Positions 27,787 through 50,950 are shown, counted from the stretch's first letter. The stretch: DNA of 53,173 nt from Macrostomum lignano (GCA_002269645.1 NIVC01002931.1:1-53173), one strand, 5' to 3'. Numbers and translations are program-made. Notes: generated by a model from the letters alone, not told the origin.

Positions 27787-29514
27787 AGCTAAATTCGGTT
27801 GTATCCAGCCTGTTCAGTCAGTTGTTGCCAACAAAAACTGGGTCCCCAATCTGCAGTCCATGCTCTGTCGCTAATGAGCAGCACCACTATACAGCTATCA
27901 CCTTATTTCCCCTTAGGGCAGGATAATCGCTTGACTCAACTCTCTTTATGCATGCGAATACGGGGGCTGGCTTTGCGGCCCCGCAGAAGGACTGATGCGT
28001 GAGCCGCTGCTGTGGAAGGATGGTAGTCCGGACACCTGTTGAGCGAGGCGGGTACAGGCGTGCATGAGCACAGACACCTGGAGCACGCTGGGGATAACGG
28101 CTGAGAGAACACGCGTATACACACCGAGTGGACAATCAGAGGAGGTTATAATGAGAAGGCAGCGGAGTTGGTCCAATTTGCATGGCGACTTTGAGAAGAT
28201 AAGACTGGAGTAACAACTCGTTACTGGGCCAGTAGGAACGGCTCGATGGGAGGGGGATGGGTAGCTTGCAGAAAAAAAACTTTTCCATCTCAAATGGGCT
28301 CCTTGTGTGCTTTTTGAGTCTCTCTCTCTTCTATTTGCTTGCTGTGCCTAGCGTGTGTGTGTGTGTGTTTTCAGTTTGTGAATGGCTTGTGAAGAGCTCG
28401 TGAAGAACCGTGTATGATGCATGCTGGACAATTAAAAATATTCTCTTTTTTCCCTCTCCGGGGCCTGAGCATTATTGTAGCTCAACCTGCAGCTGCTTAT
28501 CATCATCCTTATCCCATCCGTGCAGCCGAATGTCAGGTGGCCCAGCAGTCGCGGCCAGCTCCCGGATAATGGGATACATGTAGGCCAGGGGCGGGGATAC
28601 GCGAGATGACAGTGAGGGCCCATTCCCAATCTGCCTCCTCGTCTCCCGGGTCGCGCACAAAAGCCAGGGGGGGGATAGCAAGGAGAAACATTAGCCTCTT
28701 TGAATCGCTACTTTTTATTTTGTTGTACCGGCCGGGGCCCCCCGTCCATTACGCAAGGTAAGGGAGATAGCGGGGAGGCTGAGATGGAGAGATGGCAGCG
28801 CAGCCTAAGGAGCTTAGGCAGGATGAATGCGGATCTCTCTTCACGGCAGCTTCCCGCCTTTCTTCCAGCCTCTCGCTCGGGGTCCCGCCCCATCTCCCAC
28901 CCAAACACTTAACTATTCGAGTCTGCCAGGCGGGCTGGAGCGATGCCAGGGGTGGGGCCTTATCCCCGTATCTGGTCCGCGCCCCATTCCCCCCAGTGGC
29001 CGTGTATCAAGGATCAATGCCGGAGCTGCCTCCGTGCCCCCCCCCCAACCCTACCGTCCGAGTCCAATTGCAAGTAAAAGAGGATGGTGAATATTTGCCA
29101 GGTAAGGCGTATCCGTTTACAAAGACTGAGGAGGCATGGAGACCCCGGCTCGGATTGGGAACATTCTCAATGCCCCCCCCTCTTTGCCTCGACTCGTTCT
29201 CAACCTTCCTTTGACAGAGAGGGTTTTGGAGCAGAGAATCCCGGCTCGAGAGACGATTGCCTGCTAATCGTGGCTGCTGCCATATCTTTTGCCTCGATCA
29301 TCTCTCAGCTTTTTTGTGCGTGTTGGCCGTCCCCTCCCCTCCCCCTGACTTCAATAGGTTCAATTTTAGTGACTGAGTTTTGGAGACTGACTCACCCAGG
29401 CTTTGGATTGCTACATCAGCTGGTTCGTTTGGTAGAGTCGGGGATTAGCTTGAATTTATGAGCAGAATTCAAACTCACAATAAATTATTCTGACGTTTTA
29501 AAATACATTCTCAG

Positions 29515-29758
29515 CTCCGCGTGTGCAGCGGCCATTTTCACGACGGCGAGAAAAAAGAAGGCGACGTGCCAGTAGCCGATCCGAGCGTCGACTCGCCTAT
29601 CAAAGTAGAACTGCCGCCGCGCAGCAACAAGGCCAGCGCCGAGCGCCGGGCCAAGCGGGCCAAGTTGGCCATTGAAAAGCAGCGCGGCAGTGCCGAGAGT
29701 CCGCAGAGCTCCAACAGCTCCTCAGCCTGCGTGCGCGAGCTGCTCAACTCCAGCCCGA
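29515..29758 (+). CDS. CtBP: THAP-CtBP exon 2: THAP C-terminal C57/H60 plus basic linker
   Basis: Acceptor TTCTCAG; LRVCSGHFHDGEKKEGDVPVADPSVDSPIKVELPP...; donor A|GTGAGT, phase 1. Confidence 0.92.
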
Positions 29759-29956
29759 GTGAGTTTGCGTATAATGGATATAAAACACTGATAGCCTGGT
29801 TAAGGCATTCACCCCGCTCTATGCAGTATAAAAAATACCAAACCTCAAGGATACCAACCCCCACTCCAGATAATAATAAAACTTAAGCACTGCTAACTGC
29901 CTGAAGTGAGGTGGGTGCCTTTAGAGCTTCGCGTTTGATTTTTGCTATTGGATTAA

Positions 29957-30215
29957 GTCACCCACCCCACTCTACACTATCTGAAAACAAACGCCCCTAA
30001 CTGGCTGAGGCACCCACCCCACTCCACGCAGTCATAAAACACAAACACCCCTAACTAGCTGAGGCACCCACCCCACTCCACGCAGTCATAAAACACAAAC
30101 ACCCCTAACTAGCTGAGGCACCCACCCCACTCCACGCATTCATAAAACACAAACACCCCTAACTGGCTGAGGCACCCACCCCACTCCACGCAGTCATAAA
30201 ATGCAAACACCCCTA
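29957..30215. repeat. minisatellite, 54 bp unit (about 4.8 copies; CtBP intron 2)
   Basis: CACCCACCCCACTCC recurs at 30011, 30065, 30119 and 30173. Confidence 0.93.
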
Positions 30216-30427
30216 ACGGGTTAAGATCTTCAGAGTCATATGGCACAGGGACCCAAAATTTGTTAGAGCATCTACCTTTGTCATGCAGTCCAAAAACGCA
30301 AAGAACCAACTTGATTGAAATTCCAACCCATTTATCACAATCGCACATCTCTATTCCTGAGTGAGTCAAACGCAGAACAAGGGCAAAGAAGACAAAAGAC
30401 AAACTTATCACCAGAACCGACTCCTAA

Positions 30428-31063
<636 letters not shown>

Positions 31064-31471
31064 TAATTTTATTTTCAAAAGCCAGAACCGCTTCCTGGAC
31101 CGAGCTGACTGGGATTTCCTTTGCTAGCCCTTCGAATGGGGCAGCCAGATGCCCGAGCTGATGCCAGCCCGCGGCGCACTGAGGGCCGTATTAGGGGCAG
31201 GTTGAATAGCCCCTGCCGACATGCGGGCGGCTCACCAACCATTCTTTGCCGACCCCGGCTGCTCTGGTCGGAGCAGGAGAAGGAGGTGGAGGAAGTGCCT
31301 ACAAATCTTATCTCCCACCGGGAGCAAGCCGCAGTGCAGGCTTAAGGATGGAGAGAGGGGCCACTCTCTGCCGAGAGTCGCAGCTGCATCCGGTCGCCAG
31401 GCCGTGGCAGCGCAGCTTCCAGGGGGCTTTTCTGCCTCTCTACTCCCACTATGCTCTCCGCCGACTTTCAG

Positions 31472-31616
31472 GTGCTCAACGAGGCCGTGGCCGCTCTAAT
31501 GTGGTCGTCAATTCACCTGGGCCGAGAGGAGCTGGCCCAGTTCAGGCAGCTCAAACTGCTTGTGCAGATTGGTCCCGGAAGCGAGAATATTGATTTGGCG
31601 GCTGCCCGCAGTCTCG
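31472..31616 (+). CDS. CtBP: THAP-CtBP exon 4
   Basis: Acceptor CTTTCAG; VLNEAVAALMWSSIHLGREELAQFRQLKLLVQIGPGSENIDLAAARSL; donor G|GTGAGT. Confidence 0.93.
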
Positions 31617-31944
31617 GTGAGTTCCGGTGAATGCTTTAAAGAGGGCCCCGGGCTTCTTGGCTGCTGCTCACCGCCAGCCGCCCACCAGCGTCCTCTTGGG
31701 CTGCGCCGCCTTCCTGGATGGGAGGGCCAGTCAGTCGGGGCAAACTTCGCTAGCTACTCATCGTTCTACTAATAGAAGCCGTTCTGGACTAAAAAAACGC
31801 GGAGAAACCGCTTTAGCGTGTCCGGGGCGAGGACGGGAGGCAACCTCTTTTGCTGATGGCTCCGCCGGACTCTTGACTCGACTCAAAAACGGGGGGATGA
31901 GGGCGGGGTTGGCCACTGGTTTTTCTTTAACTTAGTTACCCCAA

Positions 31945-32252
31945 GTCATTCTACCCTCCGGTCATTCTCTTGATAGAGCGGCACCACCCTCCGGTCATTC
32001 TCTTGATAGAGCGGCACCACCCTCCGGTCATTCTCTTGATAGAGCGGCACCACCCTCCGGTCATTCTCTTGATAGAGCGGCACCACCCTCCGGTCATTCT
32101 CTTGATAGAGCGGCACCACCCTCCGGTCATTCTCTTGATAGAGCGGCACCACCCTCCGGTCATTCTCTTGATAGAGCGGCGCCACTCTCCGGTCATTCTC
32201 TTGATAGAGCGGCGCTAACCTCCAGTCATTCCCTTGATAGAGCGGCGCCACC
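31945..32252. repeat. minisatellite, 33 bp unit (CtBP intron 4)
   Basis: (ATAGAGCGGCACCACCCTCCGGTCATTCTCTTG)n. Confidence 0.96.
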
Positions 32253-32894
32253 CTCTTTCTTTAGATGAAGCTTCGCTACCCTTCGATCCTTCGATGAGCC
32301 AAGGTGGAGCCTCTCCTACTGAGAATTCCTGTCCCCATCATTGCTTTGGCTATTGTAAAAACGAACCAAAGATCTGGTCCCGGTTTTGACCGCATATTTC
32401 ATTTCCTCCGAGCTACTCCTGCCAGTTCCCTTGGCTCCCATCTTTTTTACTATCCCTGCAGCCAGCAGAAGTCTCTGCCCCATCCACCCCCCACCGAGTT
32501 GCCGAGGGAGTGGCTGGCACGAGGCAAGGCCTCTGTGACACCGGTAGTGAGCCGCTAGCATCTCTCTATCCGACTCTGCCACCCCGGCCACCCCTCCAGC
32601 TTCTTTTCTTGGGTCTTTCTTTTCTCGTCATTCGTCTCATCTGTTTCTGGTGCGTCTGCAGCTGCAACACACACCGGCACCTGACTAATTAGGCCAAAGG
32701 TGGCTTGGTGGAAGGCGAAGCCCCCGGGGGCGGCTGGGGAACTCGCGGGCTCGAGAAAGCTTTTGGGAGAAGAGCGGAGAGGAAGCGAAAAAAGGAGCCG
32801 AGCTGAGGGGATTTTGGAGGATTTGTAGGAAAAGAAAAGTAACCAAATACATTTCCAGCCATCTCTCCACCGACTCCGGTGTATGCTCATGGAC

Positions 32895-33280
32895 CGCTGC
32901 TCACTCTTGCCTGGGCTGCCCGCCACTCTCCCAGGCCGCTCCTCACTTTTACCTGGGCTGCCCGCCACTCTCCCAGGCCGCTCCTCACTCTACCTGGGCT
33001 GCCCGCCACTCTCTCAGGCCGCTCCTCACTCTTACCTGGGCTGCCCGCCACTCTCCCAGGCCGCTCCTCACTTTTACCTGGGCTGCCCGCCACTCTCCCA
33101 GGCCGCTCCTCACTCTACCTGGGCTGCCCGCCACTCTCCCAGGCCGCTCCTCACTCTACCTGGGCTGCCCGCCACTCTCCCAGGCCGCTCCTCACTCTAC
33201 CTGGGCTGCCCGCCACTCTCTCAGGCCGCTCCTCACTCTACCTGGGCTGCCCGCCACTCTCTCAGGCCGCTCCTCACTCT
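32895..33280. repeat. minisatellite, 41-42 bp unit (CtBP intron 4)
   Basis: (CTCACTCTACCTGGGCTGCCCGCCACTCTCCCAGGCCGCTC)n. Confidence 0.96.
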
Positions 33281-34307
33281 TGATACTTTTTTGTCCTGTG
33301 CCTCGGCGAGCTCACATGGTTACCTGAGGATGTATAGATGGGAATATGAAGATGTGAAGAGGCGAGAGGCGGGCAGTCGGATTGGGGTCGGGAGTTGCTT
33401 AGCAGAAGCAGAAGAGTCGCCGCTGGTGGGTCGCGCAGTGCAGATTTTTACGGCTGGCCGAGCCGAGATTCGGGGGGCTGCTTTGAGTCGGCGAGGTTTT
33501 GGTTTACAGGCCGGCAGTCCTCCAATCTCCCATCTCGAGCTGGCGGTGAGGGATATCGCATTAGCTCGGCCACTCGCCTCTCCTCACCCCCCCCCCTGGC
33601 CCGTCATCACCCTTCCAGCATCCCGCCGGACCCACTCCAGGTGGGCTGCGGTTTCGATTGACCGAGAGGAGAAAGCAGATTATCCTCACTGGACGGCCTT
33701 CCATCGTCTCTGAGCCACTCCTTGCTTGGCCTGCCTCGCACTCTGCCCCGCTGCCCCAGCCTTCCAATATTCCACTTGAGGACCAGTGTGTGTGTGCGTC
33801 TGTGTGTGTGGCCGCGCCTGTCCCAGCTGATGGCTCTCGGATTGCTCTGTCGGCATGCCAAAAAGAGGAGGAGGAGGAGGAGGGCACGGGGAAGAAGGGA
33901 GCGAGTTACGGTGTGAATCAGAGCCTCAGACAGCCTCCCCGGGTGCTTCTGGAAGCGGAGCTTTCACACCTGGCAGAGCTCCCTCTCTCTCTCTGTCTTG
34001 GACCTCCCGCTGCTCTGTCTAATCCTTTCGCAGTCTCAAGTCCGGTCCAGTGGGCAGCGATCTGCCCCCCTCACCTCTGCTACCCCCCCAGGTCTCGAGA
34101 CTACTCAGCAGGAGTCTGGATTATTCGATTTGGCAGAAAATGAATAATAACAGTAGGAATTTTGCTGCCATTTTTTCAATAGTTTTTATACCGTTGAATA
34201 TGATTGGTAATTGAAAACTACAATAAATTAGATTAAGTAGAAGTTTTTTTGACAAACAAAAGATTCCAAGCTCTCCGATGGACCACTTAATTATTGTTGT
34301 TCTGACA

Positions 34308-34368
34308 GACCTTCTGGGCCTTCGGGACCTTCGGGACCTTCGGGACCTTCGGGACCTTCGGGACCTTC
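34308..34368. repeat. 9-bp tandem repeat just upstream of the exon 5 branch point
   Basis: five perfect GGGACCTTC copies plus two degenerate copies. Confidence 0.9.
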
Positions 34369-34403
34369 ACGACACTAACAGCAATAGCAATAACCGATTC
34401 CAG

Positions 34404-34613
34404 GCATCGCGGTCTCCTGCATCTCGGGCGCTTGCGTTGAGGAGACGGCGGACTCCACCATCTGCCTCATCCTGAACCTGTACCGCAAGACCCTCTTCCT
34501 GGCTAACAACTACGCCAAGGACAGCAACGGGGCCGTCAGCATCGACCGCATGGCCGAGCTGGCCTCGGGCGCCACCAGGATTCGAGGCCAGACTCTCGGC
34601 CTGGTCGGCTTCG
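34404..34613 (+). CDS. CtBP: THAP-CtBP exon 5
   Basis: Acceptor TTCCAG; GIAVSCISGACVEETADSTICLILNLYRK...ASGATRIRGQTLGLVGF; donor G|GTAAGG. Confidence 0.94.
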
Positions 34614-34724
34614 GTAAGGTTTCCGGGGTTGGGGTCGGCTCAGGGCTCAGCAGCTCTACCAGCTTGAGTCTTGCTCATATACCTGAACCTCAGACATCTT
34701 CATCAGTTAGAACACTATCAGCTG

Positions 34725-35175
34725 GAACAATGGTCCCATCATGATGAACCATGATCCCATCATGACGAACCCTGATCCCATCATGATGAACCCTGATCCC
34801 ATCATGATGAACCCTCATCCCATCATGATGAACCCTCATCCCATCATGATGAACCCTGATCCCATCATTATGAACCCTCATCCCATCATGATGAACCCTC
34901 ATCCCATCATGATGAACCCTGATCCCATCATGATGAACCCTGATCCCATCATTATGAACCCTCATCCCATCATGATAAACCCTCATCCCATCATGATGAA
35001 CCCTCATCCCATCATGATGAACCCTCATCCCATCATGATGAACCCTCATCCCATCATGATGAACCCTCATCCCATCATGATGAACCCTCATCCCATCATG
35101 ATGAACCCTCATCCCATCATTATGAACCCGGATCCCATTGTTCTGAACCCTTATCTCATAAATTTTTATCCCTGA
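34725..35175. repeat. minisatellite, 21 bp unit (CtBP intron 5)
   Basis: (CATCATGATGAACCCTCATCC)n. Confidence 0.96.
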
Positions 35176-36039
35176 TCTCATTAGTTTTATCTGTGATCCC
35201 ACAATAATCTAGGATCCCAAATCCCAAATTGTATTATTTAACCCCCTCCAACCGTGTATCTGCTGGGCAACCAAGAGCTCAGCATTGTTCACCTTATACT
35301 CAAGCAGTTACACAAGAGAGAATTCACAGGACTCCCTGGTCCGTGACACCGCGGCAGCTTTGGGCCTACAGGGACATCCCTTCACACACACTCACTCTAT
35401 CTCTCTGTTCTGCAGCTTCCAAGCCGCCTCATCGCCGCTGCCTTGGCCTCTCAGCTCCCAAGCTTGGCTTGGGGGAGGTTAATCAGATTGAGCATGCACG
35501 ATGAGTCCCCGAGGGGTCAGGTGGACTCTCCCGGCCCGTCTCGGAGCTGGCGGCTGGGAGGGGGATGGGTGGTGGCGAGCGGCGGCGGCGGCGGCGGCGG
35601 CTGACCCGGTCGGTGGTCAAGAGCTGTGGCGGCGGCCCGCGGAAATAGGCAATTTATTTCCTAATTAGAGCGGAACCTGCCGGCACTTCTCTAGCGATGA
35701 GCCTCGCCTCCTCTCTGACCCCCCCCCCCACTGCTCACCCCAGCCCCCTACCGCTGTTTCCCACCAGCCGTGCTGTCTTGAAGTAGCAAAAGTAACTCCG
35801 CTATTTAAGGTGAGCAATCGTTAATGCGGGGTTTATTGCCCCGCCCGGAGGGGCATTGGGATCTTTGGTCCATGAGACTCTATAGTGGTGTGGACTCAAA
35901 ACTGACTCCAGAGTCCTGTAGTAACCAAAGTTATTTAGCACAGGATCCTATCAGTTCACGGGGGCAACTAAACCCTGATATAATTTATTTTATTCCCAAT
36001 TACATTCTTTTCATCATCGATCCCAATATTTTGTAGCCT

Positions 36040-36680
36040 GATTCAATCATTCTGAACCTTGATCCCGTCATTTTGGACTTTGATCCGATCATTTTTTACT
36101 CTAATCCCATCATTTATTACTCTGATCTCATTATTTTACTCGGATACAAACATTTTTACCCCCGATCCTGTCATTTTTTGCTCTGATCACATCATTTTGA
36201 TCCCTGATCACATCATTTTGATCCCTGATAACATCATTTTGTTTCCTGATCCCATCATTTTTTACTCCAATCCCATCATTTTTATCCCTGATCCCATCAT
36301 TTTTACCCCCAATTCCGTCATTTTATGCTCTGATCCATCATTTTGATCCCTGATCCCATCATTTTGATCCCTGATCCCATCATTTTGATCCCTGATCCCA
36401 TCATTTTTATCCCTGATCCCATCATTTTTACCCCCAATTCCGTCATTTTATGCTCTGATCCATCATTTTGATCCCTGATCCCATCATTTTGATCCCTGAT
36501 CCCATCATTTTGATCCCTGATCCCATCATTTTGATCCCTGATCCCATCATTTTTAATCCCTGATCACATCATTTTGATCCCTGACCCCATCATTTTGATC
36601 CCTGATCACATCATTTTGATCCCTGACCCCATCATTTGAATCCCTGATCCCATCATTTTTTACTCTGATCCCATCATTCT
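36040..36680. repeat. minisatellite, 21 bp unit (CtBP intron 5)
   Basis: (GATCCCATCATTTTGATCCCT)n, more degenerate at the 5' end. Confidence 0.93.
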
Positions 36681-38959
36681 GAAACCAAATCAGCAGAAAA
36701 GTCCCGTTCTGTCAGTCCAATGGTTGGATTTGTCTGGCGCAGAATTCGCACTGAACACTCGACCGCCTTAAGCGGTTTGCAGCCCTTTGCTCACCCAGAT
36801 TTCGAACAAGTTCGGCGGCCACTTAGGTGTAGAAGCTCACCTGGACCCCCTTTTTGAGCAGACCGCCTCCCCCCCCCCCCAATCCGGCCAAATCCGCTCC
36901 CAATCTGGGGGGGGGGGGCGCCACTCCGATGGAAGCCGAAGCTTATAAGCGGGGATGTCTCGGGGCCAACAGCTGAAGTTCCTCATATGGGGGCGGCGGC
37001 TCTCGGCTGGCCTCCCAACTCGTTAGACTCGAGCAGGCAGCCCGCCTCCTGTCGGAAATAAGAGGAGGCCAGGGGATCAGCCAGGTAGGGGCCGCGGCTC
37101 TCTCAGACGGCGAGCGGGGCGAAGTCGGCGGCCGCGCAAAATGAAAGGGGAAAAGATTGCGCCGAGCAGAAGGGAAGCGAAATGCGTTTTGAGAGCATTG
37201 GAGACTGGGAAGAGGGGGGACCGGGAGCAAGATGAGGCTGGGGAGAGAGAGAGAGAGAGAAAGGGTTAAATCTTGGGAGTAAATCCCCAGGATTCCAAGC
37301 TCGGGGCTGGGCGAGCTTTCAGAGAAAGGATGAGGCTGCGGGCTGGAGATGGGGGCTGATGGGGCTGCTGCAGCGAGGCTGGGAGGCTGGGAGCGGCCTG
37401 GAAATAATGATGAGCTCAGGTAGGCCCGGGACCGTAATCCCGCTTCACCTACCAGTCAGCCGCAGCCTCCGGGAACGTCACTTAATTAGCGTCGTCCTCC
37501 CAGCCTTCCCGTCCTTCCCTCCTCCTTCGCCCCGCTGTCTCCCTCCGCCTTCTTTTCCTCTTCTTTGCTCCCACTCTTGCAGGCCAACTTTCGCCCTCTC
37601 CTCCTCACTTTCTCGGCCGGCCTGTCAAATCCAAGCCGCGGCTCGGCCGCTCTCCAGCTCCAAGCCGGCCGCCGCTTCAGCTGCGCCCGTAAAGGCGGGG
37701 CTTTGGAGGGGGGTTTGCGGATGAAGCTTCTCAGGGCGGGGACAAAATCCCCTCCAGGGTCTCTTCGTTTTTCTCCTCCATCTTTCTCTCTCTCTCTCTC
37801 TAATCTCGCAGCCACACCCTGACACTCTCCGCTACATTCGGCCAGCCTTCTGTCTCTGCCACCCTCACCACCCACCTATGGCGCATCGGACCAGGTGTCC
37901 AAGAAATAGAGAGAGCGAGAGAGGGGGGAGGCTGCTTCCTACTCCTAAAAAAGCGGAGCTCTCCGAGAGAGCGGACTGGAGTCCGCGGACCAGCTGCGTC
38001 CCTGATTGCATTAAGCCGCCCGGGCGGCCCTGAGGACCTTTGGCGTAGCCTCATCAAACCGGCGTACGAACCCCCCTCCGGGATCCTCCGCTTCCCATTT
38101 TTAAACTGTTTCACTCTGACTGAGCTGGCAGGTGTGTCTCATCGCCTGTTGCTCCGTCGGAGGTCCCGGATTCGAGTCGCAGCAGAGGAAATTTAGTAGG
38201 AGAGCTGAGCAGCCCAGTGGCCGCTAGCAATACTAATACTCTGCCTTCACTGTTTCTTTTGCTTTGCCCCCAGGGCAGTGGCCCAGCAGGCAAAAGGGAT
38301 TATCTTTTCCCTTTTCCTCTCCTGGTCCTGCCTCCTCCCTGCCTCCCTCCCCGTGTCCTCGCCTTCCGCGCTCCTTTATCTCAATCCGTCTTCCTCTCTA
38401 CCAAACTCGCCTTTCTCTTCCTCTCGGACAGCGCAGCATTGATTTACCTGACTGGCCGAAAGTGAGGCAAAAACTATGCCTATACTATGAGGCGGAGAAG
38501 CTGGGGGACAGGTTGGCGCTCGGACTCGCAGCCTCCCAGCTGCCGCATCACTGCAACTCAAAGCTACAGCTTCTCTCTACGCTGCTCGCCTCACCCAGAT
38601 TTTGTTCCGCATGGATTTTTTATGTCAGTTACAGCTCCGGTTTGTGGTGGGGGGGGGGCACCCCCTGCCAGTCCCCGGCCGGCTGTAACAGGTCAATAAA
38701 ATGTTTGATCCCCAGGCCCAGCGGTGACTTCTCCCGTTCCGCATCACTCCCATGTCTCCATTGATGACATCCCAGAGATATCTTCCAGCTACCCCGCCGC
38801 TCCCATTTTTATCCTCATGCAATCATTCGTTGAGGGGTCGCGAGAGCCCGCCGTGCTCAAAATTAATATGCTGGAATTTTCTTAGCAGAGAGGGGAGACG
38901 CTGGCAAAACTCCACGGTTCCCCTTCAGCCTCACTGACTCCCGAGATATTTTGCCTCCT

Positions 38960-39590
38960 CTTCATCTCTTTCTTTCCTCTACTCTCACATATCTACTCTC
39001 CCATCTCATGTCTACTCTCCGATCCTACGTCTACTCTCCGATCCTACGTCTACTCTCTCATCCCATGTCTTCTCTCCCATTTCATATCTACTCTCTCATC
39101 TCATTTCTACTCTCCCATCTCATGTCTACTCTCTTTCTCATGTCTACTCTTCCATCTCATATCTACTCTCCCATCATGTCTACTCTCAGGCATGGGATGG
39201 GAGGACATGTCCCCCCAGTAAAAGCTATGGAGGGAAATTCCAATGCTTTGTCCCCCCACCCCACCTTGTGACTCGTTGTGGTAATCAATAAATTTTCTTC
39301 AGGGCGCCAAAATATAGCGCCTTCGGCGCCAAAATGAGTGCCTGCGGAGTCAAAATGAGGGTTGACAACACGATTCTCAAAATAATGAAAATGTAGGAAT
39401 TCAGTCATGTACATGTACATGTTGAATTCTTGGCTTTGTTTCCCCATCATAAAATCCATGGCGACGTCCCTGTCTCCGATCCCACGTCTACTCTCCCAGC
39501 ACATGTCTACTCTTCCATCTCATTCTTGCTTTCCATCCAATATCACTTCTCTTTCTCATGTCTACTCTCTACTACCAGGTCTAGCCTCCA
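38960..39590. repeat. degenerate 19-bp minisatellite patches (about 38960-39190 and 39470-39590)
   Basis: ATGTCTACTCTCCCATCTC variants. Confidence 0.8.
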
Positions 39591-40233
39591 TCTCATTCTG
39601 TTAATTTTTGTCCTATCTCTAACTTTTTCCTCTTAATCCAGATTCCAGTCTCCCCAGGCTGGAGCAGTTTGCAGCAGCCTCTCAATCGGCATGCGATGAA
39701 GCAGCAGTGGGGATCTGCTTGTGCCCGAATACGGGGATATCGCTGCTGGTTGGATATCCCTCTGAACTGGGACTGGTGGTTGTTCAGCTGCATAGCTGAT
39801 GAGACAGTCAGGCGGGTGGCCTCTCTGCAATCGGCCCCGCAATCACGCATTCAGGCCAGGCAACTCGCGGCTGAGACAAAAACACACCAGGAAAATGTCT
39901 GGCAGAGAGCAGCTGAGCTTTGATTGAGTCAACTGCGGGGAATTGGTTTCTGGCGAGTCTTCAGCTCTGTTGGGAATTCCGATGCGATTTTTGGAAGCCG
40001 GTCGGTCCTGTGGGATGCGGCCAGATGACATGAGATTGCCACTGAGAGCAGATGCCTTGTCACCATGCGCTTTTGTCTCTTGTTTAGCGTCTCTGCTCTG
40101 GGGGTAATTTTGTGCGCTTGCTGGCTGGTGGAAACCTCTGGCTATTTTTTCCTGGAATGATTTTCGAAGGAGTCAATGAAGAGGAAAGTAAAGGGTGAAA
40201 CGGTAATAATGAGTCTGAGGGAAGCGGGAAGTC

Positions 40234-41000
40234 AGGGATCTGAGGGAAATGAAGGATCTGCGGGAAATGAAGGATGTGAGGGAAATGAAGGATGTGAGGG
40301 AAATGAAGGATCTGAGGGAAATGAAGGATCTGAGGGAAATGAAGGATGTGAGGGAAATGAAGGATCTGCTGAGGGAAATGAAGGATCTGCTGAGGGAAAT
40401 GAAGGATCTGCTGAGGGAAATGAAGGATCTGAGGGAAATGAAGGATGTGAGGGAAATGAAGAATTTGAGGGAAATGAAGAATCTGAGGGAAATGAAGGAT
40501 GTGAGGGAAATGAAGGATGTGAGGGAAATGAAGGATGTGAGGGAAATGAAGGATGTGAGGGAAATGAAGGATGTGAGGGAAATGAAGGATCTGCTGAGGG
40601 AAATGAAGGATCTGAGGGAAATGAAGAATCTGAGGGAAATGAATGATGTGAGGGAAATAAAGGATCTGCTGAGGGAAATGAAGGATCTGAGGGAAATGAA
40701 GGATGTGAGGGAAATGAAGGATGTGAGGGAAATGAAGGATTTGAGGGAAATGAAGGATCTGAGGGAAATGAAGAATCTGAGGGAAATGAATGATGTGAGG
40801 GAAATAAAGAATCTGCTGAGGGAAATGAAGGATCTGAGGGAAATGAAGGATCTGAGGGAAATGAAGGATGTGAGGGAAATGAAGGATGTGAGGGAAATGA
40901 AGAATTTGAGGGAAATGAAGGATTTGAGGGAAATGAAGGATGTGAGGGAAATGAAGAATTTGAGGGAAATGAAGGATTTGAGGGAAATGAAGGATCCGAG
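40234..41000. repeat. purine-rich minisatellite, 18 (21) bp unit
   Basis: (GAGGGAAATGAAGGATCT/GT)n. Confidence 0.96.
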
Positions 41001-41679
41001 GAAAGCGGGAGTGAACGGCTGGAGGCCATCTTTACAGTTCGTTATTCGAACAAATCTCCAAGAGAGAAAAGAGAACTCGCGTCAAGTTGAGAGAGAGCTT
41101 TCCCCCTTTCTCCATTCTGCCAACACGTTCGAGCCAATTTTCGGCGCTCGAAGTTGAGTAAAAACTGGTTGCCCCAGCCCATCAACCAGCCGGCTGCGGT
41201 GCGGTCTCGAAGTGGCCAGCCAGGCGTGTAAGCCAGCCCCGATTTCGCACTGGTAGGAAGTGGAAGTGTGCAGCTAAACTAGTTTCTTTTTCTCCTTTTT
41301 TAAGCCAGCCACCGCCCGCACTCCGCTGAGTTATTGCCGGCCGACAGTGTGGGATATAAGTGTCATTCATCTCCGGTCCGGAGCCGCTGGAAGAATGAGA
41401 GAACGGCTGAGAAGAGAGAGAAAGAGGGAGCGGCTGCAGCTGGGAGAAGTCGGAGAGCTCGGATCAAAGTTCCCTCGCATTGCCCCCCCCTCTTCCCCAT
41501 TTTTGAGTGAGTTTGGAAGCAGATGCCACTGCTAAACTGAGAGAGCTGAAAACTCGATGGGCCAAAATTCCGGCCTGGGGGGAGCAGCCATCGCTCTTTG
41601 ACTGAGGAGGCTGGGAAGCTGAGCGGCTCTGATACACTTTGCTAGTGTTATTGTTAAATAACAATGGGCTTGAGAGATT

Positions 41680-43490
41680 ATATGGAATGGATTGCTAATC
41701 TAGCCTACATCATGGATGAAGGAATAGAATGGATTGCTAATCTAGCCTGCATCATGAATGCAGGAATAGAATGGATTGCTAATCTAGCCTACACCAATGA
41801 AGGAATAGAATGGATTGCTAATCTAGCCTGCATCATGAATGAAGGAATATAATGGATTGCTAATCTAGCCTACATCATGAATGAAGAAATAGAATGGATT
41901 GCTAATCTAGCCTACATCATGGATGAAGGAATAGAATGGATTGCTAATCTAGCCTACACCAATGAAGGAATAGAATGGATTGCTAATCTAGCCTACATCA
42001 TGAATGAAGGAATAGAATGGATTGCTAATCTAGCCTGCATCATGAATGAAGGAATAGAATGGATTGCTAATCTAGCCTACATCATGGATGAAGGAATAGA
42101 ATGGATTGCTAATCTAGCCTACATCATGAATGAAGAAATAGAATGGATTGCTAATCTAGCCTACATCATGAATGAAGGAATAGAATGGATTGCTAATCTA
42201 GCCTGCATCATAAATGAAGGAATAGAATGGATTGCTAATCTAGCCTACATCAATGAAGGAATAGAATGGATTGCTAATCTAGCCTACCTCATGAATGAAG
42301 GAATAGAATGGATTGCTAATCTAGCCTACATCATGAATGAAGAAATAGAATGGATTGCTAATCTAGCCTACATCATGGATGAAGGAATAGAATGGATTGC
42401 TAATCTAGCCTACACCAATGAAGGAATAGAATGGATTGCTAATCTAGCCTACACCAATGAAGGAATAGAATGGATTGCTAATCTAGCCTACATCATGGAT
42501 GAAGGAATAGAATGGATTGCTAATCTAGCCTACATCATGAATGAAGGAATAGAATGGATTGCTAATCTAGCCTGCATCATAAATGAAGGAATAGAATGGA
42601 TTGCTAATCTAGCCTGCATCATGAATGAAGGAATAGAATGGATTGCTAATCTAGCCTACATCATGAATGAAGGAATAGAATGGATTGCTAATCTAGCCTA
42701 CATCATGAATGAAGAAATAGAATGGATTGCTAATCTAGCCTACCTCATGAATGAAGGAATAGAATGGATTGCTAATCTAGCCTACATCATGAATGAAGGA
42801 ATAGAATGGATTGCTAATCTAGCCTACATCATGGATGAAGGAATAGAATGGATTGCTAATCTAGCCTACACCAATGAAGGAATAGAATGGATTGCTAATC
42901 TAGCCAACACCAATGAAGGAATAGAATGTATTGCTAATCTAGCCTACATCATAAATGAAGGAATAGAATGGATTGCTAATCTAGCCTGCATCATAAATGA
43001 AGGAATAGAATGGATTGCTAATCTAGCCTACATCATGAATGAAGGAAATGAATGGATTGCTAATCTAGCCTACATCATGAATGAAGGAATAGAATGGATT
43101 GCTAATCTAGCCTACATCATGAATGAAGAAATAGAATGGATTGCTAATCTAGCCTACATCATGGATGAAGGAATAGAATGGATTGCTAATCTAGCCTACA
43201 CCAATGAAGGAATAGAATGGATTGCTAATCTAGCCTACATCATGAATGAAGGAATAGAATGGATTGCTAATCTAGCCTGCATCATGAATGAAGGAATAGA
43301 ATGGATTGCTAATCTAGCCTACATCATGAATGAAGGAATAGAATGGATTGCTAATCTAGCCTACATCATGAATGAAGGAATAGAATGGACTGCTAATCTA
43401 GCCTACATCATGAATGAAGGAATAGAATGGATTGCTAATCTAGCCTGCATCATGAATGAAGGAATAGAATGGATTGCTAATCTGGCCTAG
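41680..43490. repeat. minisatellite, 42 (39) bp unit, about 43 copies
   Basis: (GAAGGAATAGAATGGATTGCTAATCTAGCCTACATCATGAAT)n. Confidence 0.97.
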
Positions 43491-44500
43491 ATGAGCCTAG
43501 ATGAATAGAATAGCATTTTAAGTAGGTAATTAAAAGTGAATTCACCGAGTTTCTCTACGTGAGGCCCTGTAGCTCAGTCAGGCGCGCCCCTTCGTGACCC
43601 ATTGGCCGAAAACTGGCCCCTAAGATTTCCGCCCGAGCTTGGCTTAGGGATCGGGAGGACGAGGCTGCGGGTTGGGATTTGAGCAACACAGGATCTGGCA
43701 GTGATTACACCTTGATTCGGGTTACATCCCGATGCCCGGCCTTGCTACATGGGGGCTTTTCGCTTGCCTGCCTTGCCGCCTTTGCTACCAGAGAGAGATG
43801 GGGAGAGTGGGCGGGCGCATGAGCTGGATGGATTCTGGATCATGGAGGCGAAATTCAGGCAAGCGCGAAAGACTGAATGCAGGTCTGGGGAAGCAGAGAA
43901 CCCACGCATCGCTACGGGGTAAAAGGGGAGCACCTCACCTGACTGACTGACTTATTGCGGCGGTTCTGCATCAAAAGAGACTGAGGTTGCTGGGTTAGGA
44001 TTTTTTGGGGGTAAGCAAGCTGATGGAGAAAGAGAGAGGCCCAATGGACCGCAGCGAATATTTTTAGTTTGTGTGTTTCCAGCGCTGCCTGCCCTCTGTT
44101 TGCCTTTAAGGCGACGTTTTCCTTTGTGCCCCAAAAAACGGATTTCCACCTGGCCTGATCCTCGCAGTTTTCTTTCTGATCATTTGTTTTTTCTTCAAGC
44201 TCAGCTGCGTTAAAAAGCCTGCGTGCTCAGTGGTTTTGGTTTCCAAAGCCGGTAATTATTATTTGTACAGCCACTGTTAAGAAGAGCTGACAGATATGAC
44301 TGTTCCTTGTGCCTTTCAGTCAAGTATTCAGCAATATTATTGAGCAGAAATATTGGCTGCATATGGTGATTCATACGTATTTATCTTACCAGCCGTCGTA
44401 TAGGCAGCCGATTTCACACCCAGAACCGCCCTCTCCTCCGCCTAGGCCCTAGACAAAATGAAGCCTATAGCATTTCTGGCACTTAATTCTTTCTTCTCAG

Positions 44501-44728
44501 GCCGAGTCGGCACCGCTGTGGCCATCCGGGCTCGGGCTTTTGGCTTCCAGGTTGTGGTGTTCGATCCAAACCTGGCCGAAGGCGTCGAGAGCTCGTTCGG
44601 CGTCGGCAGGGCCGGCAGCATTGAGGAGCTGGTGGCGGCCAGCGACTGCGTGAGTTTGCACTGCCCGGATGGGCCGGGCACTCGCAGACTCATCAGCGAG
44701 CAGGCGATTCGATGCGCCAAAAAGACAG
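44501..44728 (+). CDS. CtBP: THAP-CtBP exon 6 (NAD-binding Rossmann fold)
   Basis: Acceptor TTCTTCTCAG; GRVGTAVAIRARAFGFQVVVFDP...DCVSLHC; completes GFGRVG; donor G|GTGAGT. Confidence 0.95.
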
Positions 44729-44850
44729 GTGAGTGTTGAAACTAAACAGGAATGTTGTCAATCAGTCCAGGAGAAGAGCCTATGTTGCAGCAGAGTTTAT
44801 TGACCAATATATTCCAACGCTATCTCCGTGGTTGCTCGTGGTCTCCGCAG

Positions 44851-44982
44851 GCTTCTTTCTGGTGAACACCTGCTCCGCCGCGCTGATGGACGAGGCCGCA
44901 GTGGCCGACGCCCTACGCGACGGTATTGTCCGCGGCCTTGCGCTCGACCTGCCCAACCGCTGCGCCATTGACGTTGAGAATG
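44851..44982 (+). CDS. CtBP: THAP-CtBP exon 7
   Basis: Acceptor CTCCGCAG; GFFLVNTCSAALMDEAAVADALRDGIVRGLALDLPNRCAIDVEN; donor G|GTGAGC. Confidence 0.92.
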
Positions 44983-45497
44983 GTGAGCTGCTCATAAAGT
45001 CACCTGCTCTAGCATGATTTATGATTCTATTATTGGGTCAGATACCCAAAATGGTTATGCAAAACTTTTATAATTAAACATGTCAATCGTGCTTCTTAGA
45101 ATACGAAGTAGCTGTGTGAGTTTATTTATTATTTTAGACTTTTTCCATAATTAGGCTATACTAAACACCAATTGCCTACTAACGAAAGTAGCCAGAAAAG
45201 AATGCAAAGCGAATCTCTTTAATGGTGTGGGCAAAAAGATTTAGCATTTTTAGCACTAAAATTGCCAGAAGCTCTTCCGAATTTTTAACTGGAGCAAAGG
45301 TGTATTGTCAGGTGAAAATCACTCGCAGCACGCACACGCTCACGCAGGGTGTACAGCGGCTCTGACTTCTCACTGTCAGGCATGTTCGCCTCTGTGCCTT
45401 TGGGAGTTGGCCCTCATGGGCGGGAGCTACAGGTCCTGGGCCAATTTACTTGTCCATGTCCGACAACACCTCTCCCCTCTGCTCCCCGCTACCGCAG

Positions 45498-45904
45498 GCG
45501 CCCTGAAGGACTGTCCGAACGTGGTGGCCACCCCGGGCTCGGCCTTCTACAGCGACCAGGCCTGCGCCGAGCTGCGCGAGCTGGCGGCAGAGGAGATCCG
45601 GCGCGGATTGGCCGCCGCCTGCCGGACAGTCTGAAATTCTGCGTCAACTCGGAGCCGGCCGCCATTGCCTGTCCGGCCAAGCGGCCTCGGACAGCCGGTC
45701 AGGCGCGCTTTGCCACGGCGACTGCCTCGACCGCCTCCTCATCATCCGGAGCGTCGTCCAGCACCGGAGGCAGCATCGGCCGGGGCGGCGGCTGCACCAG
45801 CGGCGACTTTCTTCACCAGGCAGCCAAACGGGCCGCAGCTTCCTGCCTGTCGAAGCCGGTGCCGCCACCAGGCTTCGGGGCGCCGCCGATCCGACTGAAC
45901 TTTG
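45498..45904 (+). CDS. CtBP: THAP-CtBP exon 8 (apparent 1-nt deletion at about 45614)
   Basis: GALKDCPNVVATPGSAFYSDQACAELRELAAEEIRRGLA, then after a frameshift (G)RLPDSLKFCVN, matching CtBP GRIPDSLKNCVN; donor G|GTGAGT at 45905. Confidence 0.88.
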
Positions 45905-45925
45905 GTGAGTTGAGTGACTTGTCTG

Positions 45926-46822
45926 AGTGACCCGTCTGAGTGACCGGTCTGAGTGACCGGTCTGAGTGACCGGTCTGAGTGACCGGTCTGAGTGACCGGT
46001 CTGAGTGACCGAGTGAACCGTCTGAGTGAACCGTCTGAGTGACCCGTCTGAGTGACCCGTCCTGACTAACATCCTGCCTTGACCCATAAATGAGTTATCC
46101 ATCCAGTGACCCTTCAGTAGCCATAAATTGATTATCCATGAGTGACCCATGAGTGATCCATGAGTGACCCATGAGTGACCCATGAGTGATCCATGAGTGA
46201 CCCATGAGTGACCCATGAGTGATCCATGAGTGACCCATGAGTGACCCATGAGCCAATGAGTGACCCATGAGTGACCGATGAGCCAATGAGTGACCCATGA
46301 GTGACCGATGAGCCAATGAGTGACCCATGAGTGACCCATGAGCCAATGAGTGATCCATGAGTGACCCATGAGTGACCCATGAGTGACCCATGAGTGACCC
46401 TTGAGTGATCCATGAGTGACCCATGAGTGACCCATGAGTGACCCATGAGTGACCGATGAGCCAATGAGTGACCCATGAGTGATCCATGAGTGACCCATGA
46501 GTGACCCATGAGTGATCCATGAGTGACCCATGAGTGACCCATGAGTGATCCATGAGTGACCCATGAGTGACCCATGATCCAATGAGTGACCCATGAGTGA
46601 CCGATGAGCCAATGAGTGACCCATGAGTGACCGATGAGCCAATGAGTGACCCATGAGTGACCCATGAGCCAATGAGTGATCCATGAGTGACCCATGAGTG
46701 ACCCATGAGTGACCCATGAGTGACCCTTGAGTGATCCATGAGTGACCCATGAGTGACCCATGAGTGACCCATGAGTGACCGATGAGCCAATGAGTGACCC
46801 ATGAGTGATCCATGAGTGACCG
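45926..46822. repeat. compound minisatellite: 13-bp GTCTGAGTGACCG (to about 46060), then 11-bp CCATGAGTGAC (from about 46135)
   Basis: tandem units filling CtBP intron 8. Confidence 0.96.
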
Positions 46823-46896
46823 TGCAACTGTCCATAGAAGAACATGGCTTTGATGAGCCGTCATTAACTCGCCAGCTCGCCAACCCCCGTTGCTAG

Positions 46897-47039
46897 GCTA
46901 CGTGGACTCGTTCCCCCAGTCGAGCTTGGCCTCCCTAATGCTGCCGGGAGCCAATTATGACTCGCTGCATGCCGCCGCGCTCAGCTCGGTGGCGCCCCTT
47001 CACTATGACGCGTTCGGCAAGAAGGACATTCTTATCTGA
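46897..47039 (+). CDS. CtBP: THAP-CtBP exon 9 (C-terminal tail; alternative in-frame acceptor at 46876)
   Basis: Acceptor TGCTAG in phase 1 with exon 8; GYVDSFPQSSLASLML...FGKKDILI*; GC-rich codon usage, then AT-rich 3' UTR. Confidence 0.7.
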
Positions 47040-47375
47040 TGTTGAACAAGCTTTTAAATTCGATGCATGCAGTTTGAAACACACTTTTCTATCTTATTAT
47101 ATCAATATATTTTGAGTCATGTCTCGATTAATAATTCATGATTAGAGAGTCATAGCCGCCCGCACCCTGTTGCTCCGTTTCAACACGTCTTGTTGATCCT
47201 TGTAAAGAAAGGCGCACCTCCGCCCCAGTTGCAGAAATGTTTTTTTTGCTTTTTTTGCTGCTTATCCGTAGCCGTCTCCAGTGTCCAGTTGTAGCTGCAG
47301 TGTGCTTTTTTGCTAAAAGTACAAATTTGTGATTTTAAAATTCAATGCTTTGCGTCGCTTCAAGGCTATTCGTGA

Positions 47376-47381
47376 AATAAA
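47376..47381 (+). terminator. candidate polyadenylation signal of CtBP
   Basis: AATAAA 337 nt after the stop, followed by T/GT-rich sequence. Confidence 0.5.
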
Positions 47382-48543
47382 TGTCTGTTTAACTGTTCTC
47401 ACTATTTTGATTTCTGTTTAATATTTTGCTTGTGTAAAGCAGTGTTTGAATGTGTATAGTGCTTATTCTTAGCACAGCTAGTGAAACAGTTCTCGCACAC
47501 CTGCTGCAGGTACGCAAGCTTGATTGCTTATTTACTTCACATTTGCTTTTGTAGACGCTTTATTAAAATGCTCTTATATTTTCTCACGTTTTTTGTAAAT
47601 TTATAATTGTCATGCTTGCACTCAACTACTACTAGGCTAGTGGGCAGTAGTGTTTGTGTGTATTTGTTCGCAAAATTAAAAAAATACTTCTTTTATTAGA
47701 ATTGTACTTGATCTTGCCTCTTGAATCAGACAGATCGGCTCGCTAGCGGAGTTCCAGCAGGGTTCGGTAGTTCAACAGATGAATGAAAGCGACGTTTTAT
47801 TTCGAAGAAAAAAAAAACTCTTTTTGAAAGCTTTTTAAAGAATGCGTCTCATTTTTGCCCGTGTTTTTTACGGTCTCGCTTGCCTGCTTTAAATACGTTT
47901 GTGTTTGCAAATATTAATATTCAACATTATATTGCATGTTTATTAGAGCGTACGATTAATTAAAATGCCAGAAACGAGTTCACGTAATTTTAAAATTTTA
48001 AATTCGCACGGAGGAAGAAAAATAAGTCAGACTTGCACCAAATTTGGAAGAAAAGCAATTCAAAAGCACTCGAAATTGGGGGGGGGGTGAAACCAGATGG
48101 AGCATCAAAGGCCTCAGTTTCCTTTCTAAATCTTTCCAACTCGTTCTGAAATTACGTTTAGGACCGAAACGTCTTCATAAAATATTGGAGAGTTTATGAA
48201 CAGCTTAGTTAAAATGCTGTAAAATTTGCTAACTATTGCTTCAGAATAACAAATTAAAATTGAAGTTTTTTATACGCTAAATAGAAAACGATGCTTGAAC
48301 TTCTGGGCAGGGATAATTTCTCTAGTAAAGACAAATCCGAGCAAGCAGAAGTAATAATAAGAATTGATTGCACCTGCCGTAATGGGCAGATGTGCAACCG
48401 ACAGCTCAGCCGTAGCTATTGCGCGGCGCATCTGAAGGCTGCGTACGGCTGTTCAGTTCAAGGACTGGGGGGTCGCCACACACACCCTCAATTACCCCAG
48501 CTAATGCTGGCACCCATTTTACAGCTGGGTGAACTGAAGCAAT

Positions 48544-48655
48544 CCTGTACTTTGAGTGCTGCCACCCACCTCATTCCATCCCTGTACTTTGAGTGCTGTC
48601 ACCCACCTCACTCCATTCCTGTACTTTGAGTGCGGCCGTCCACCTCACTCCATCC
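48544..48655. repeat. 37-bp tandem repeat x3 directly after the MFS stop codon
   Basis: CCTGTACTTTGAGTGC at 48544, 48581 and 48618. Confidence 0.9.
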
Positions 48656-48663
48656 CGATCAGT

Positions 48664-50088
48664 TTAGTTGATTTTGCTATTCACGATGGTCGCTGCAGTC
48701 CGGCGTCCAACGGCGATGTCGCCACGCTCCAGCTCCGAGTAGGCCTCGGGATCGTGCTCCAGCTGCTGCTGCTGCTGGGCGCGCGTCTCCACGTCGAGTT
48801 GCTTGAGCAGCTCGTAACGGTCCCTGCGACTGGCCGCCTTGAGCATGATGATGATGAGCAGTAGTGCCAGGAACTTGATGAATATCAGGAAGCCCTGGAT
48901 GACGAAGAAGTATCGATATTCGTAGCGCTCGGCGATCATGGCAGTGACCGAGGGCGACAGCGCCATGCCGACCCCCATGCCGGCCAGGCTGAACGGGTAG
49001 GCCAGGTGTCCGGGCAAGGTGGTCATCTCCTCGCCAGCCGGAACAAAAATGTAATGCTGGGTCCCATGCAGAAGCCGGAGATGTAGGCCAGGATGTAGCT
49101 CAGAGTCTTGTTAGAAGCCACCACCTCCCAGTAGACAAGGCTGCAGGCCATGATGAAGGTAGTGACGCTGAGGATGTACTTTAGCCGGCCTTTGAGAAAG
49201 TCTTTCGTAGCGATGGCCAGCACGGCTGCGATGGCGTAGGTCGAAGCCTCTCCGGAAGCGAATAGCAAAGTCAGGTGTGAGCTCTTAGTCAGCGATGACT
49301 CCCGCCTGCGCACGTAGTCGGCCAGGTTCAGCAGCATGCCGTACGTCACGATGCTGGTCATGACGCGGTCGAGGAACCACAACAGCAGGTAGGGCACCTT
49401 GGAGCGTTCCACCTCCCAGAAGGCGCCGAAGCACTGCTTGTTGCTGGAGTAGGGCGGCAGTTCTTCGCGTTTAGTGAAGAAAATGCTGCCAGAAATGTTG
49501 ACGAAAAAGTAAATGACGCCAAGAATGATGAAGGCGTTTCGCCAGGTGTACAGTTCGATCAAGTAAGCGTACAGCTGCACGAACAGGATGGAGGCGATTG
49601 AACGCCAGACACGAGGTCGTAGCAAGGATGTGGTACGGATGCTGCTTGTCGAAGTGCTCGTTGACCACCAGGCGACTGTGCTGAGGATCAGCGAGCTGCC
49701 GACGCCGTGGAAGACTGTGTGCGTCAGGAACAGCCAGTGCGGGTTCGGCACGAATGCACTAGTGATGCAGGCGAGCAGGATGGCCAGGGTGCCCAGCATC
49801 TGGAAGAACTGGAAGCGCCGGCCGCTGCTCAGGATAACGGAGGTGCTCAGCGTTGTGGTCATGTAGCCTACGGCGGCGTAGGAGTCGCCAATCCAGTTGA
49901 GCTCGGCGAGGGAGATCGTCCCGTTGAACTCGGCGTGCAGTTGGGCAACAAAGACGCCGAATGCGCGTCGCTTGCCGCCGAGAAAGATGACGTTGGTGGC
50001 TGCGCAGCCCAGGATCAGCCAGGCCAGAGCTCCCTTCGCCTGTGCTGCTGGGCTGGGCTGCAATTGCGGGGGTGGGGGTTGGGGCTTT
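48664..50088 (-). CDS. MFS transporter, SLC16/monocarboxylate-transporter-like, main exon (four apparent 1-nt deletions); about 487 aa when corrected
   Basis: Multiple hydrophobic helices; AFGVFVAQL, WIGDS, HGVGSSL, LIELYTWRNAFIILG parallel the MCT family pattern; acceptor GTTCTGCAG at 50089-50090; TAA at 48664-48666. Confidence 0.85.
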
Positions 50089-50106
50089 CTGCAGAACCAA
50101 CCAGCT

Positions 50107-50863: not shown

Positions 50864-50915
50864 CCCAGACGTAGGTTTTCATGCTCAAAGTTTCGTTAAG
50901 CACCCCAATTCTTAC

Positions 50916-50950
50916 ACAGGATGGCTTTCCTCTTCCGCCGTCAGTGCCAT
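50916..50950 (-). CDS. MFS transporter, probable first coding exon (MALTAEEESHPV)
   Basis: CAGCATGG start with an in-frame TGA upstream; donor GT|GTAAGA at 50915 is phase 2, matching the 50088 acceptor; acceptor TGCTTTAG 15 nt before the ATG. Confidence 0.65.

Follow-up and report, generated by a model that had tools for sequence, protein, structure and literature searches.

CtBPs that carry a THAP domain (THAP-CtBPs) have been described as a group of their own (Nicholas et al. 2008, as presented in PMC9907507 and PMC8816384), and for one of its members, CTBP-1a of Caenorhabditis elegans, the THAP cysteines were found to be required in vivo (bioRxiv 10.1101/2020.06.09.143248). The catalytic Arg-Glu-His triad is conserved in all bilaterians except the nematodes, which lost one of its residues (Raicu et al. 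2023, PMC9907507), and plant ANGUSTIFOLIA has no conserved catalytic residues (PMC9907507). The catalytic residues appeared dispensable in work on mammalian cells and important in work on flies (summarised in PMC9907507). Here we describe a THAP-CtBP gene of the flatworm Macrostomum lignano, located in a stretch of 53,173 nucleotides (GCA_002269645.1 NIVC01002931.1:1-53173) that was analysed as a whole and is called the window below. The gene has eight exons on the + strand (26167-45930) with GT/AG boundaries throughout, and its predicted product consists of a CtBP core that is preceded by a C2CH THAP DNA-binding finger with a disordered linker and followed by a disordered tail. Judging by the translated exons, the core has kept none of the residues required to transfer hydride or bind the substrate, with R97, R266, E295 and H315 all replaced, together with H77 (human CtBP1 numbering). 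We estimate at about 70% the probability that the gene encodes a functional, DNA-tethered CtBP pseudoenzyme.

Fold and active site of the CtBP core

The core is clearly that of an animal CtBP. In HMMER alignments it matched the solved CtBP1 and CtBP2 chains (PDB) with E ~1e-112 versus 1e-27 for the next dehydrogenases, the best matches over the whole core being CtBPs and not other D-2-hydroxyacid dehydrogenases, and its identity to animal CtBPs is 52-55%. The Pfam models 2-Hacid_dh_C, 2-Hacid_dh and THAP all scored above their cut-offs in the protein, with 113 bits for the NAD domain versus 182 bits in the canonical M. lignano paralog (described below). The AlphaFold model of the protein (pLDDT, predicted local distance difference test, 78; pTM, predicted template modelling score, 0.72) retrieved only CtBP1/2 structures among its top 20 Foldseek matches (E ~1e-39, TM ~0.7).

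The best-conserved part of the core is the PXDLS-binding cleft. Exon 3 (30447-30769, + strand) encodes a Ser/Thr/Pro-rich linker followed by the cleft segment, which is 70% identical to human CtBP1 residues 25-74; residues 28-70 show 86% identity to the family consensus versus 46-61% for the other segments. The VAFCDAQ...HEKV segment is present and A52, H63 and V66 are kept, from which peptide binding is predicted. The sequence-only reading had indeed described an intact VAFCD/HEKV cleft, but had let the domain start at 31472, whereas the two motifs lie some 700 nt further upstream (VAFCD at 30725-30739, HEKV at 30761-30772). Exon 5 (34404-34613, + strand) encodes ISGACVEETADST, the dimer helix with LNLYRK, and TRIRGQTLGLVGFG, which holds the first half of the GXGXXG motif. 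Exon 6 (44501-44728, + strand) starts with the RVG that finishes GFGRVG and encodes the D204 equivalent (VVFDP), LHC and a divergent loop, PDGPGTRR. The Rossmann motif and D204, reported before as intact, are thus present, with the qualification that GFGRVG is whole only once an intron of 9.9 kb has been spliced: GFG ends at 34613, RVG starts at 44501, and G|GC rebuilds the codon. Taken together, the core keeps the two-domain fold of CtBP, the PXDLS-binding cleft, GXGXXG-17-D and most of the dimer helix; R141 and R171 are likewise kept.

The active site, on the other hand, is gone. Residue frequencies were taken from an alignment of 116 metazoan CtBPs with the solved human CtBP1/2 chains. In exon 4 (31472-31616, + strand), which encodes a strand of the substrate-binding domain, the motif VQIGPG (31562-31579) has Q for R97 (R in 116/116) and P for S100 (S in 102/116), and MWSSIH has S for H77 (H in 109/116). 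Exon 7 (44851-44982, + strand) contains NTCSA (44865-44879), in which A265 is replaced by C (A in 116/116), R266 by S (R in 114/116) and G267 by A, and LDLPNRCA (DLPNRCA at 44946-44966), in which D290 is kept while E293 became N, E295 became C (E in 115/116) and P296 became A. Exon 8 (45498-45930, + strand) has TPGSAF (45530-45547) with G for H315 (H in 110/116), followed by the C-terminal helix EEIRRGLAGRLPDSLKFCVN and a tail of about 100 residues with KRPR. The Arg-Glu-His triad of animal CtBPs and active D-2-hydroxyacid dehydrogenases is therefore replaced by S/C/G at R266/E295/H315, and nonetheless the protein is a CtBP homologue by descent. The protein alters 45 of the 171 family-invariant columns and keeps 126, the radical changes being concentrated at the active site and in the 239-241 loop; at the general rate of 45/171, joint change of R97, R266 and E295 has a probability of ~0.017, and of ~0.004 when H315 is included. 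The codons for NTCSA, DLPNRCA and TPGSAF are also found in a second assembly of the species, Mlig_3_7, and VQIGPG recurs in the UniProt model A0A1I8I8H0, and therefore the replacements are not read errors.

Most of what the sequence-only reading said about these positions held. R97Q, S100P, R266S, E295C and H315G were confirmed, as was their distribution as in-frame replacements over three exons. The loss of W318 was not borne out: the F found there is the majority state (89/116) and an ordinary protostome residue, which the canonical M. lignano CtBP has too. The claim that the NAD(H) site is kept stands for GXGXXG-17-D, T264, D290, C237 and R184, but not for S100, A265 and the L239-E241 loop with N240, which are changed. 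Of the cysteines proposed as new around the former active site, C265 is common to both M. lignano CtBP paralogs with a lost active site, whereas the other copy has Ser at positions 295 and 119, and the 'DCP' cysteine also occurs in the canonical paralog. Redox sensing and thiol sensitivity of the protein are speculation.

In principle the protein could still be an enzyme, either as a 2-hydroxyacid dehydrogenase of low activity in which other residues stand in for the lost ones, or through a new thiol chemistry around Cys265. In favour of this, the protein still has the Rossmann motif, D204, T264 and D290, Cys265 is conserved within NTCS in both copies, and the loop HCPDGPGTRRLI resembles the generic H-x-P...T..LI pattern of D-2-hydroxyacid dehydrogenases. 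Nevertheless, the triad and the substrate-binding Arg are now Q, S, C and G, which are incapable of acid/base chemistry or carboxylate binding, and at 293-296 and 239-241 the two copies have drifted apart, which a working active site would not do. We consider residual enzymatic activity very unlikely; the catalytically dead character of the protein is as well supported as its sequence alone permits.

Gene structure and the THAP domain

Exons were mapped by tblastn, a six-frame motif search and manual splice mapping with boundaries read by eye; the tblastn probe was a human CtBP1 sequence, which served as probe only. All 14 of 14 splice sites are canonical and the phases are consistent. Two THAP exons upstream of the CtBP exons, overlooked by the sequence-only reading, were revealed by UniProt entry A0A1I8IUV3 (P0004; M. 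lignano, 'THAP-type domain-containing protein'), the first 360 residues of which are identical to our gene model; an ATG at 30527, considered as the start of the gene, was rejected on this ground. Exon 1 (26167-26325, + strand), which equals the start of A0A1I8IUV3, contains the start ATG and the first half of the THAP zinc finger (C5 and C10; MPTTCGFPNCKF...TIVSQ) and ends in a GT donor. Exon 2 (29515-29758, + strand) encodes the second half, where RVCSGHF completes the C2CH signature, and a basic linker, RRAKRAKL. The finger scored 36.4 bits with Pfam THAP (cut-off 23.9), has C5, C10, C57 and H60, and is ~80% identical over 89 residues (E=9e-49) to PDB entry 2JM3, which we take to be the THAP domain of C. 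elegans CtBP. Between exon 1 and its counterpart in the THAP-CtBP gene of the annelid Lamellibrachia satsuma the identity is 90%. That the finger is N-terminal to the CtBP core in one gene follows both from the UniProt model, in which the exons are joined, and from the canonical splice sites.

A0A1I8IUV3 does not contain exons 6-8. Its last 64 residues are drawn from inside the 9.9 kb intron (34614-44500, + strand, phase 1), namely from 35394-35483 and 37580-37711, so that the public model is without the whole Rossmann domain and the dead active site is hidden. It might be argued that this is the real product, a short protein of THAP and half a CtBP, and that the Rossmann exons have fallen into disuse since it is the only public gene model and since minisatellites have inflated the intron. 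Against this, the 64 intronic residues match no homologue and are surrounded by repeat arrays, the frames of exons 6-8 are still open, with canonical splice sites and phases that fit (including the split codon of GFGRVG), these exons differ from the second assembly by synonymous changes only, and a paralogous gene (P0136, see below) was modelled through the same junction. We therefore hold such a product to be quite improbable, and regard the intronic end as a mis-prediction, with a short isoform as a possibility. The tandem repeats inside the intron are located at 34734-35159, 36019-36683, 38988-39187, 40236-41001 and 41685-43489. A transposon insertion was considered as the origin of the intron and rejected, its contents being minisatellites with no open reading frame (ORF) matching Pfam. 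A0A1I8I8H0 (P0187) is a second M. lignano model of the gene, in which the N-terminal 40 residues are exon 3 in another frame, joined by a deletion just before RPLVALL; it may represent another copy or another assembly error.

The intron positions are all common to the L. satsuma gene (P0080; locus L002, JAHXPS010000454.1), with introns after THAP Q53, in HEK|V, G|IAV, G.G|RVG and ..G|AF, and at ..|.LKD. The exon-intron structure is thus the same throughout, which identifies the gene in the window as the ancestral THAP-CtBP locus of spiralians. In the annelid protein VRLGTG, NTARGG, HENEP and TPHSAF are preserved, and it looks catalytically competent. In the annelid locus, about nine tandem copies of 85 bp carry the exon for IAVCNVPGYGVEEVADT...LNLY (L002 18507-19250), and P0080 as annotated contains a duplicated segment and, where the THAP intron lies, an insert of 20 residues; all of this resembles an artefact of assembly or annotation. 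Three top-scoring matches, vertebrate CtBP models from Acipenser sinensis (P0001-P0003, flagged UNVERIFIED_CONTAM), have internally repeated exons, and owe their high bit scores to this exon duplication and not to closeness to the query.

Paralogs, constraint and the frameshift

A catalytically intact paralog, the search for which had been proposed before, does exist in M. lignano. BOX15_Mlig004953g1 (P0055) has RIGSG, NTARG, FESEP and TPHSAF, and thus an intact triad. Its gene (L001 10001-14009, from Mlig_3_7 contig NIVC01002687.1) has three introns versus seven in the THAP-CtBP gene, which makes the triad-intact copy the structurally derived, intron-poor one, and no THAP exon was found within 10 kb upstream.

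An exhaustive search of cluster representatives yielded a second dead paralog in the same species, A0A1I8H0E2 (P0136), and no other dead copy from a flatworm, in addition to the nematode and springtail cases described below; a profile search with the two dead sequences gave no further dead orthologues beyond P0136 and P0004. P0136 is 62-65% identical to the protein in the window and has NTCS and TPGSAF as well. The two copies have the derived states A265C and R266S in common, and also H315G, which places the catalytic loss before the duplication that yielded P0136. Positions 293, 295 and 296 (E293, E295, P296) and 239-241 (L239, N240, E241) are derived in both copies with different residues, as would be expected of a disused active site. 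A neighbour-joining placement of the dead clade was not used, as the clade grouped with long branches (the H315N sequences), which was judged to be long-branch attraction.

Because the loci of P0004 and P0136 were not on record by exact product, a protein-level conservation test and a neutral simulation took the place of dN/dS. The two dead copies are identical to each other at 78% of the family-invariant, 57% of the intermediate and 36% of the variable columns (Fisher p=1.5e-6). Such a pattern points to purifying selection since catalysis was lost: the scaffold has remained constrained while the former active-site loops drifted freely. In a substitution-only neutral simulation the frame stayed open in 1.3% of the runs at 38% amino acid divergence and in 0.5% at 45%.

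The sequence-only reading overlooked a frameshift just past the end of its range: the window copy is interrupted in its last exon by a 1-nt deletion between 45613 and 45614, where a G is missing from GCC[G]GCC, and the frame as written stops at 45632-45634. The corresponding contig of Mlig_3_7, NIVC01001503.1 (L003), was reached with the neighbouring transporter protein BOX15_Mlig001059g2 as anchor, and window positions 39437-53173 are collinear with it. At the site the window reads GGATTGGCC-GCCGCC versus GGATTGGCCGGCCGCC in Mlig_3_7, in which the frame is open (EEIRRGLAGRLPDSLKFCVNSE..., about 100 tail residues and then a stop). Following EEIRRG, the window goes on in the +1 frame as ...RRLPDSLKFCVN, and the corrected peptide aligns residue for residue with P0136 (EEIKRGLTGPLPAALQFCVN) and with human CtBP; in this frame the stop is the TGA at 45928-45930. 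A position of the frameshift at 45605-45606 was rejected, as the alignment with Mlig_3_7 places the deletion at 45613^45614. The neighbouring gene (48667-50024, - strand), an intronless SLC16/MFS monocarboxylate transporter gene with a protein 92% identical to BOX15_Mlig001059g2, has five 1-nt deletions in G/C runs (50026, 49674, 49617, 49604 and 49042) compared with Mlig_3_7, where it is an intact annotated ORF. Given these deletions of the same type and the open frame in Mlig_3_7, the frameshift is most likely an assembly artefact of the window contig. For the remainder, the protein encoded by exon 6 is identical in both assemblies (a single, synonymous nucleotide difference) and exon 7 is 100% identical in nucleotides.

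Several observations weigh against a functional pseudoenzyme, and some of them can be read as signs that the gene is a decaying, unprocessed CtBP pseudogene, in which the replacements, the frameshift and the missing transcript-based annotation reflect loss of function. The window copy is frameshifted, the CtBP exons on NIVC01001503.1 belong to no gene called in the NCBI annotation of Mlig_3_7, and no transcript evidence was found for the gene. P0136 is out of frame in its model over the equivalent of exon 4, where R97 cannot be scored, and may be a damaged copy. Evolution was accelerated: identity to the annelid THAP-CtBP is 53%, whereas the canonical paralog has 77%. Among 5.8 billion clusters there was no BOX15 or Logan protein for the gene or for P0136, although Logan also lacked the canonical CtBP and clearly expressed neighbours such as the transporter, which makes absence there weak evidence. 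The only public model stops in the large intron, and the 9.9 kb splice is deduced from the split codon and homology. The exonic differences between the assemblies (two, both synonymous, versus seven intronic) go in the expected direction without being significant (p=0.087). The changes at S100, N240, A265 and H315, the first three of which we take to be NAD(H) contacts, make NAD(H) binding uncertain, and R163, presumably an Arg of the dimer interface, is Ala in both dead copies. Nevertheless, a pseudogene is unlikely: the sole deletion is absent from Mlig_3_7 and is of a kind that the window assembly also introduced in an intact neighbour, the splice sites are all canonical, the THAP domain has stayed close to that of a nematode, both dead paralogs conserve exactly the family-invariant columns, in a non-neutral manner, and neutral drift to such divergence seldom leaves a frame open.

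Throughout the window we observed very dense minisatellite arrays, with units of 11-45 bp in up to 88 copies, which have inflated the introns (for instance at 3011-3528, 16132-16648, 19087-20986, 23097-24227, 26810-27785, 41685-43489, 46136-21 and 50119-50868). The arrays yield long spurious ORFs, e.g. at 41877-43490 and 45644-46864. A complete ORF of 167 amino acids at 11192-11695 (- strand) encodes two HMG boxes (Pfam HMG_box, E=1e-36) and resembles an intronless HMGB-type gene.

Relation to other CtBPs and a possible role

The architecture of the protein is like that of C. elegans CTBP-1a, with a THAP finger, a linker, a PXDLS cleft, a dehydrogenase-like core and a disordered tail, and erosion of the triad is also seen in nematode members of the group. 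The differences are that the gene is from a flatworm (a spiralian), that R97, R266, E295 and H315 are all gone, that it exists beside a separate canonical CtBP gene and not as one locus with a THAP-less isoform, and that it has a second dead paralog. With the canonical animal CtBPs (human CtBP1/2, Drosophila CtBP and BOX15_Mlig004953g1) it has the fold, the cleft residues and GXGXXG-17-D in common; it differs from them in the absent triad and substrate-binding Arg, in the THAP domain, in an about twofold higher divergence from the annelid orthologue and in a tail unrelated to the canonical C-terminal domain. This tail, as read in the corrected frame, consists of about 100 Ala/Ser/Pro/Gly-rich residues after FCVNSE and has the character of a disordered tail, in line with a report that the C-terminal domains of flatworm CtBPs are unrelated to the canonical motifs (PMC9907507). 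ANGUSTIFOLIA shows only ~30% identity to animal CtBPs, of which it is not regarded as an orthologue; it is a cytoplasmic protein that lacks a THAP domain and has a C-terminal extension and motifs specific to plants, whereas the protein described here nests within the animal CtBPs by score and by gene structure (animal introns) and is not a member of the ANGUSTIFOLIA group.

Eroded triads were also found outside the flatworms. One to three triad residues are lost, as judged from one automatic alignment, in nematode THAP-CtBPs (Bursaphelenchus, Panagrellus, Globodera and Strongyloides) and in Orchesella springtails. Replacement of one, two or all three residues of the triad is seen in many CtBPs in the databases, e.g. 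in the THAP-CtBP of Bursaphelenchus okinawaensis, which goes beyond the published statement on nematodes; they include P0148, P0145, P0142, P0149, P0138, P0134 and P0139 from nematodes and P0162, P0170, P0146 and P0157 from Orchesella. The springtail paralogs with eroded triads (Orchesella cincta ODN03116.1 and ODM94696.1; O. dallaii CAL8092032.1 and CAL8092360.1) occur beside a canonical CtBP and are of independent origin; no THAP domain was seen in them. A group of otherwise canonical CtBPs from environmental or Logan contigs (P0024, P0036, P0050, P0051, P0052 and P0105) has H315N. We found no description of the springtail paralogs in the literature, and nothing relevant on a CtBP pseudoenzyme or on a Macrostomum CtBP. 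With undescribed triad-eroded CtBPs present in both nematodes and springtails, catalytic loss, as judged from these alignments, seems to have occurred more than once in the family.

The functional pseudoenzyme that we favour would act as a DNA-tethered corepressor scaffold, in which the THAP finger may bind DNA directly, as in CTBP-1a, and the cleft may recruit partners with a PXDLS motif. The dehydrogenase-like domain would then serve only as an oligomerisation module, possibly with nucleotide binding as well. In C. elegans a single locus covers two roles by alternative promoters that give isoforms with and without the THAP domain; in M. lignano these roles would be split between genes, which may have freed the THAP copy from the need to keep catalysis. 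A more specific proposal, which we consider rather doubtful, is that the dead THAP-CtBP is a DNA-tethering subunit that heterodimerises in an NAD(H)-dependent manner with the canonical, catalytically intact CtBP, with Cys265, which both dead paralogs keep beside the former nicotinamide pocket, as a redox thiol switch. If so, the flatworm would have separated 'sensing and tethering' from 'catalysis' into different genes, and would offer a natural separation-of-function system for the question of what the enzymatic activity of CtBP is for.

The THAP-CtBP architecture as such is known; what is new is that a complete loss of the active site goes together with the retention of two dead copies, with an intact paralog in the same genome and with strong conservation of the THAP domain. 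The case also adds flatworms and annelids to the animals with this architecture, their THAP domains being nearly identical. Macrostomum lignano is a flatworm open to RNA interference and transgenesis, and the dead and canonical CtBPs form a natural separation-of-function pair in this species. Since the first CtBP structures it has long been debated whether repression needs dehydrogenase chemistry or only NAD(H)-driven assembly. The presence of at least two spiralian CtBP-derived genes that lack the whole triad and the substrate-binding Arg and yet are under continuing constraint, beside a canonical copy, indicates that the CtBP scaffold has a selectable role that needs no catalysis.

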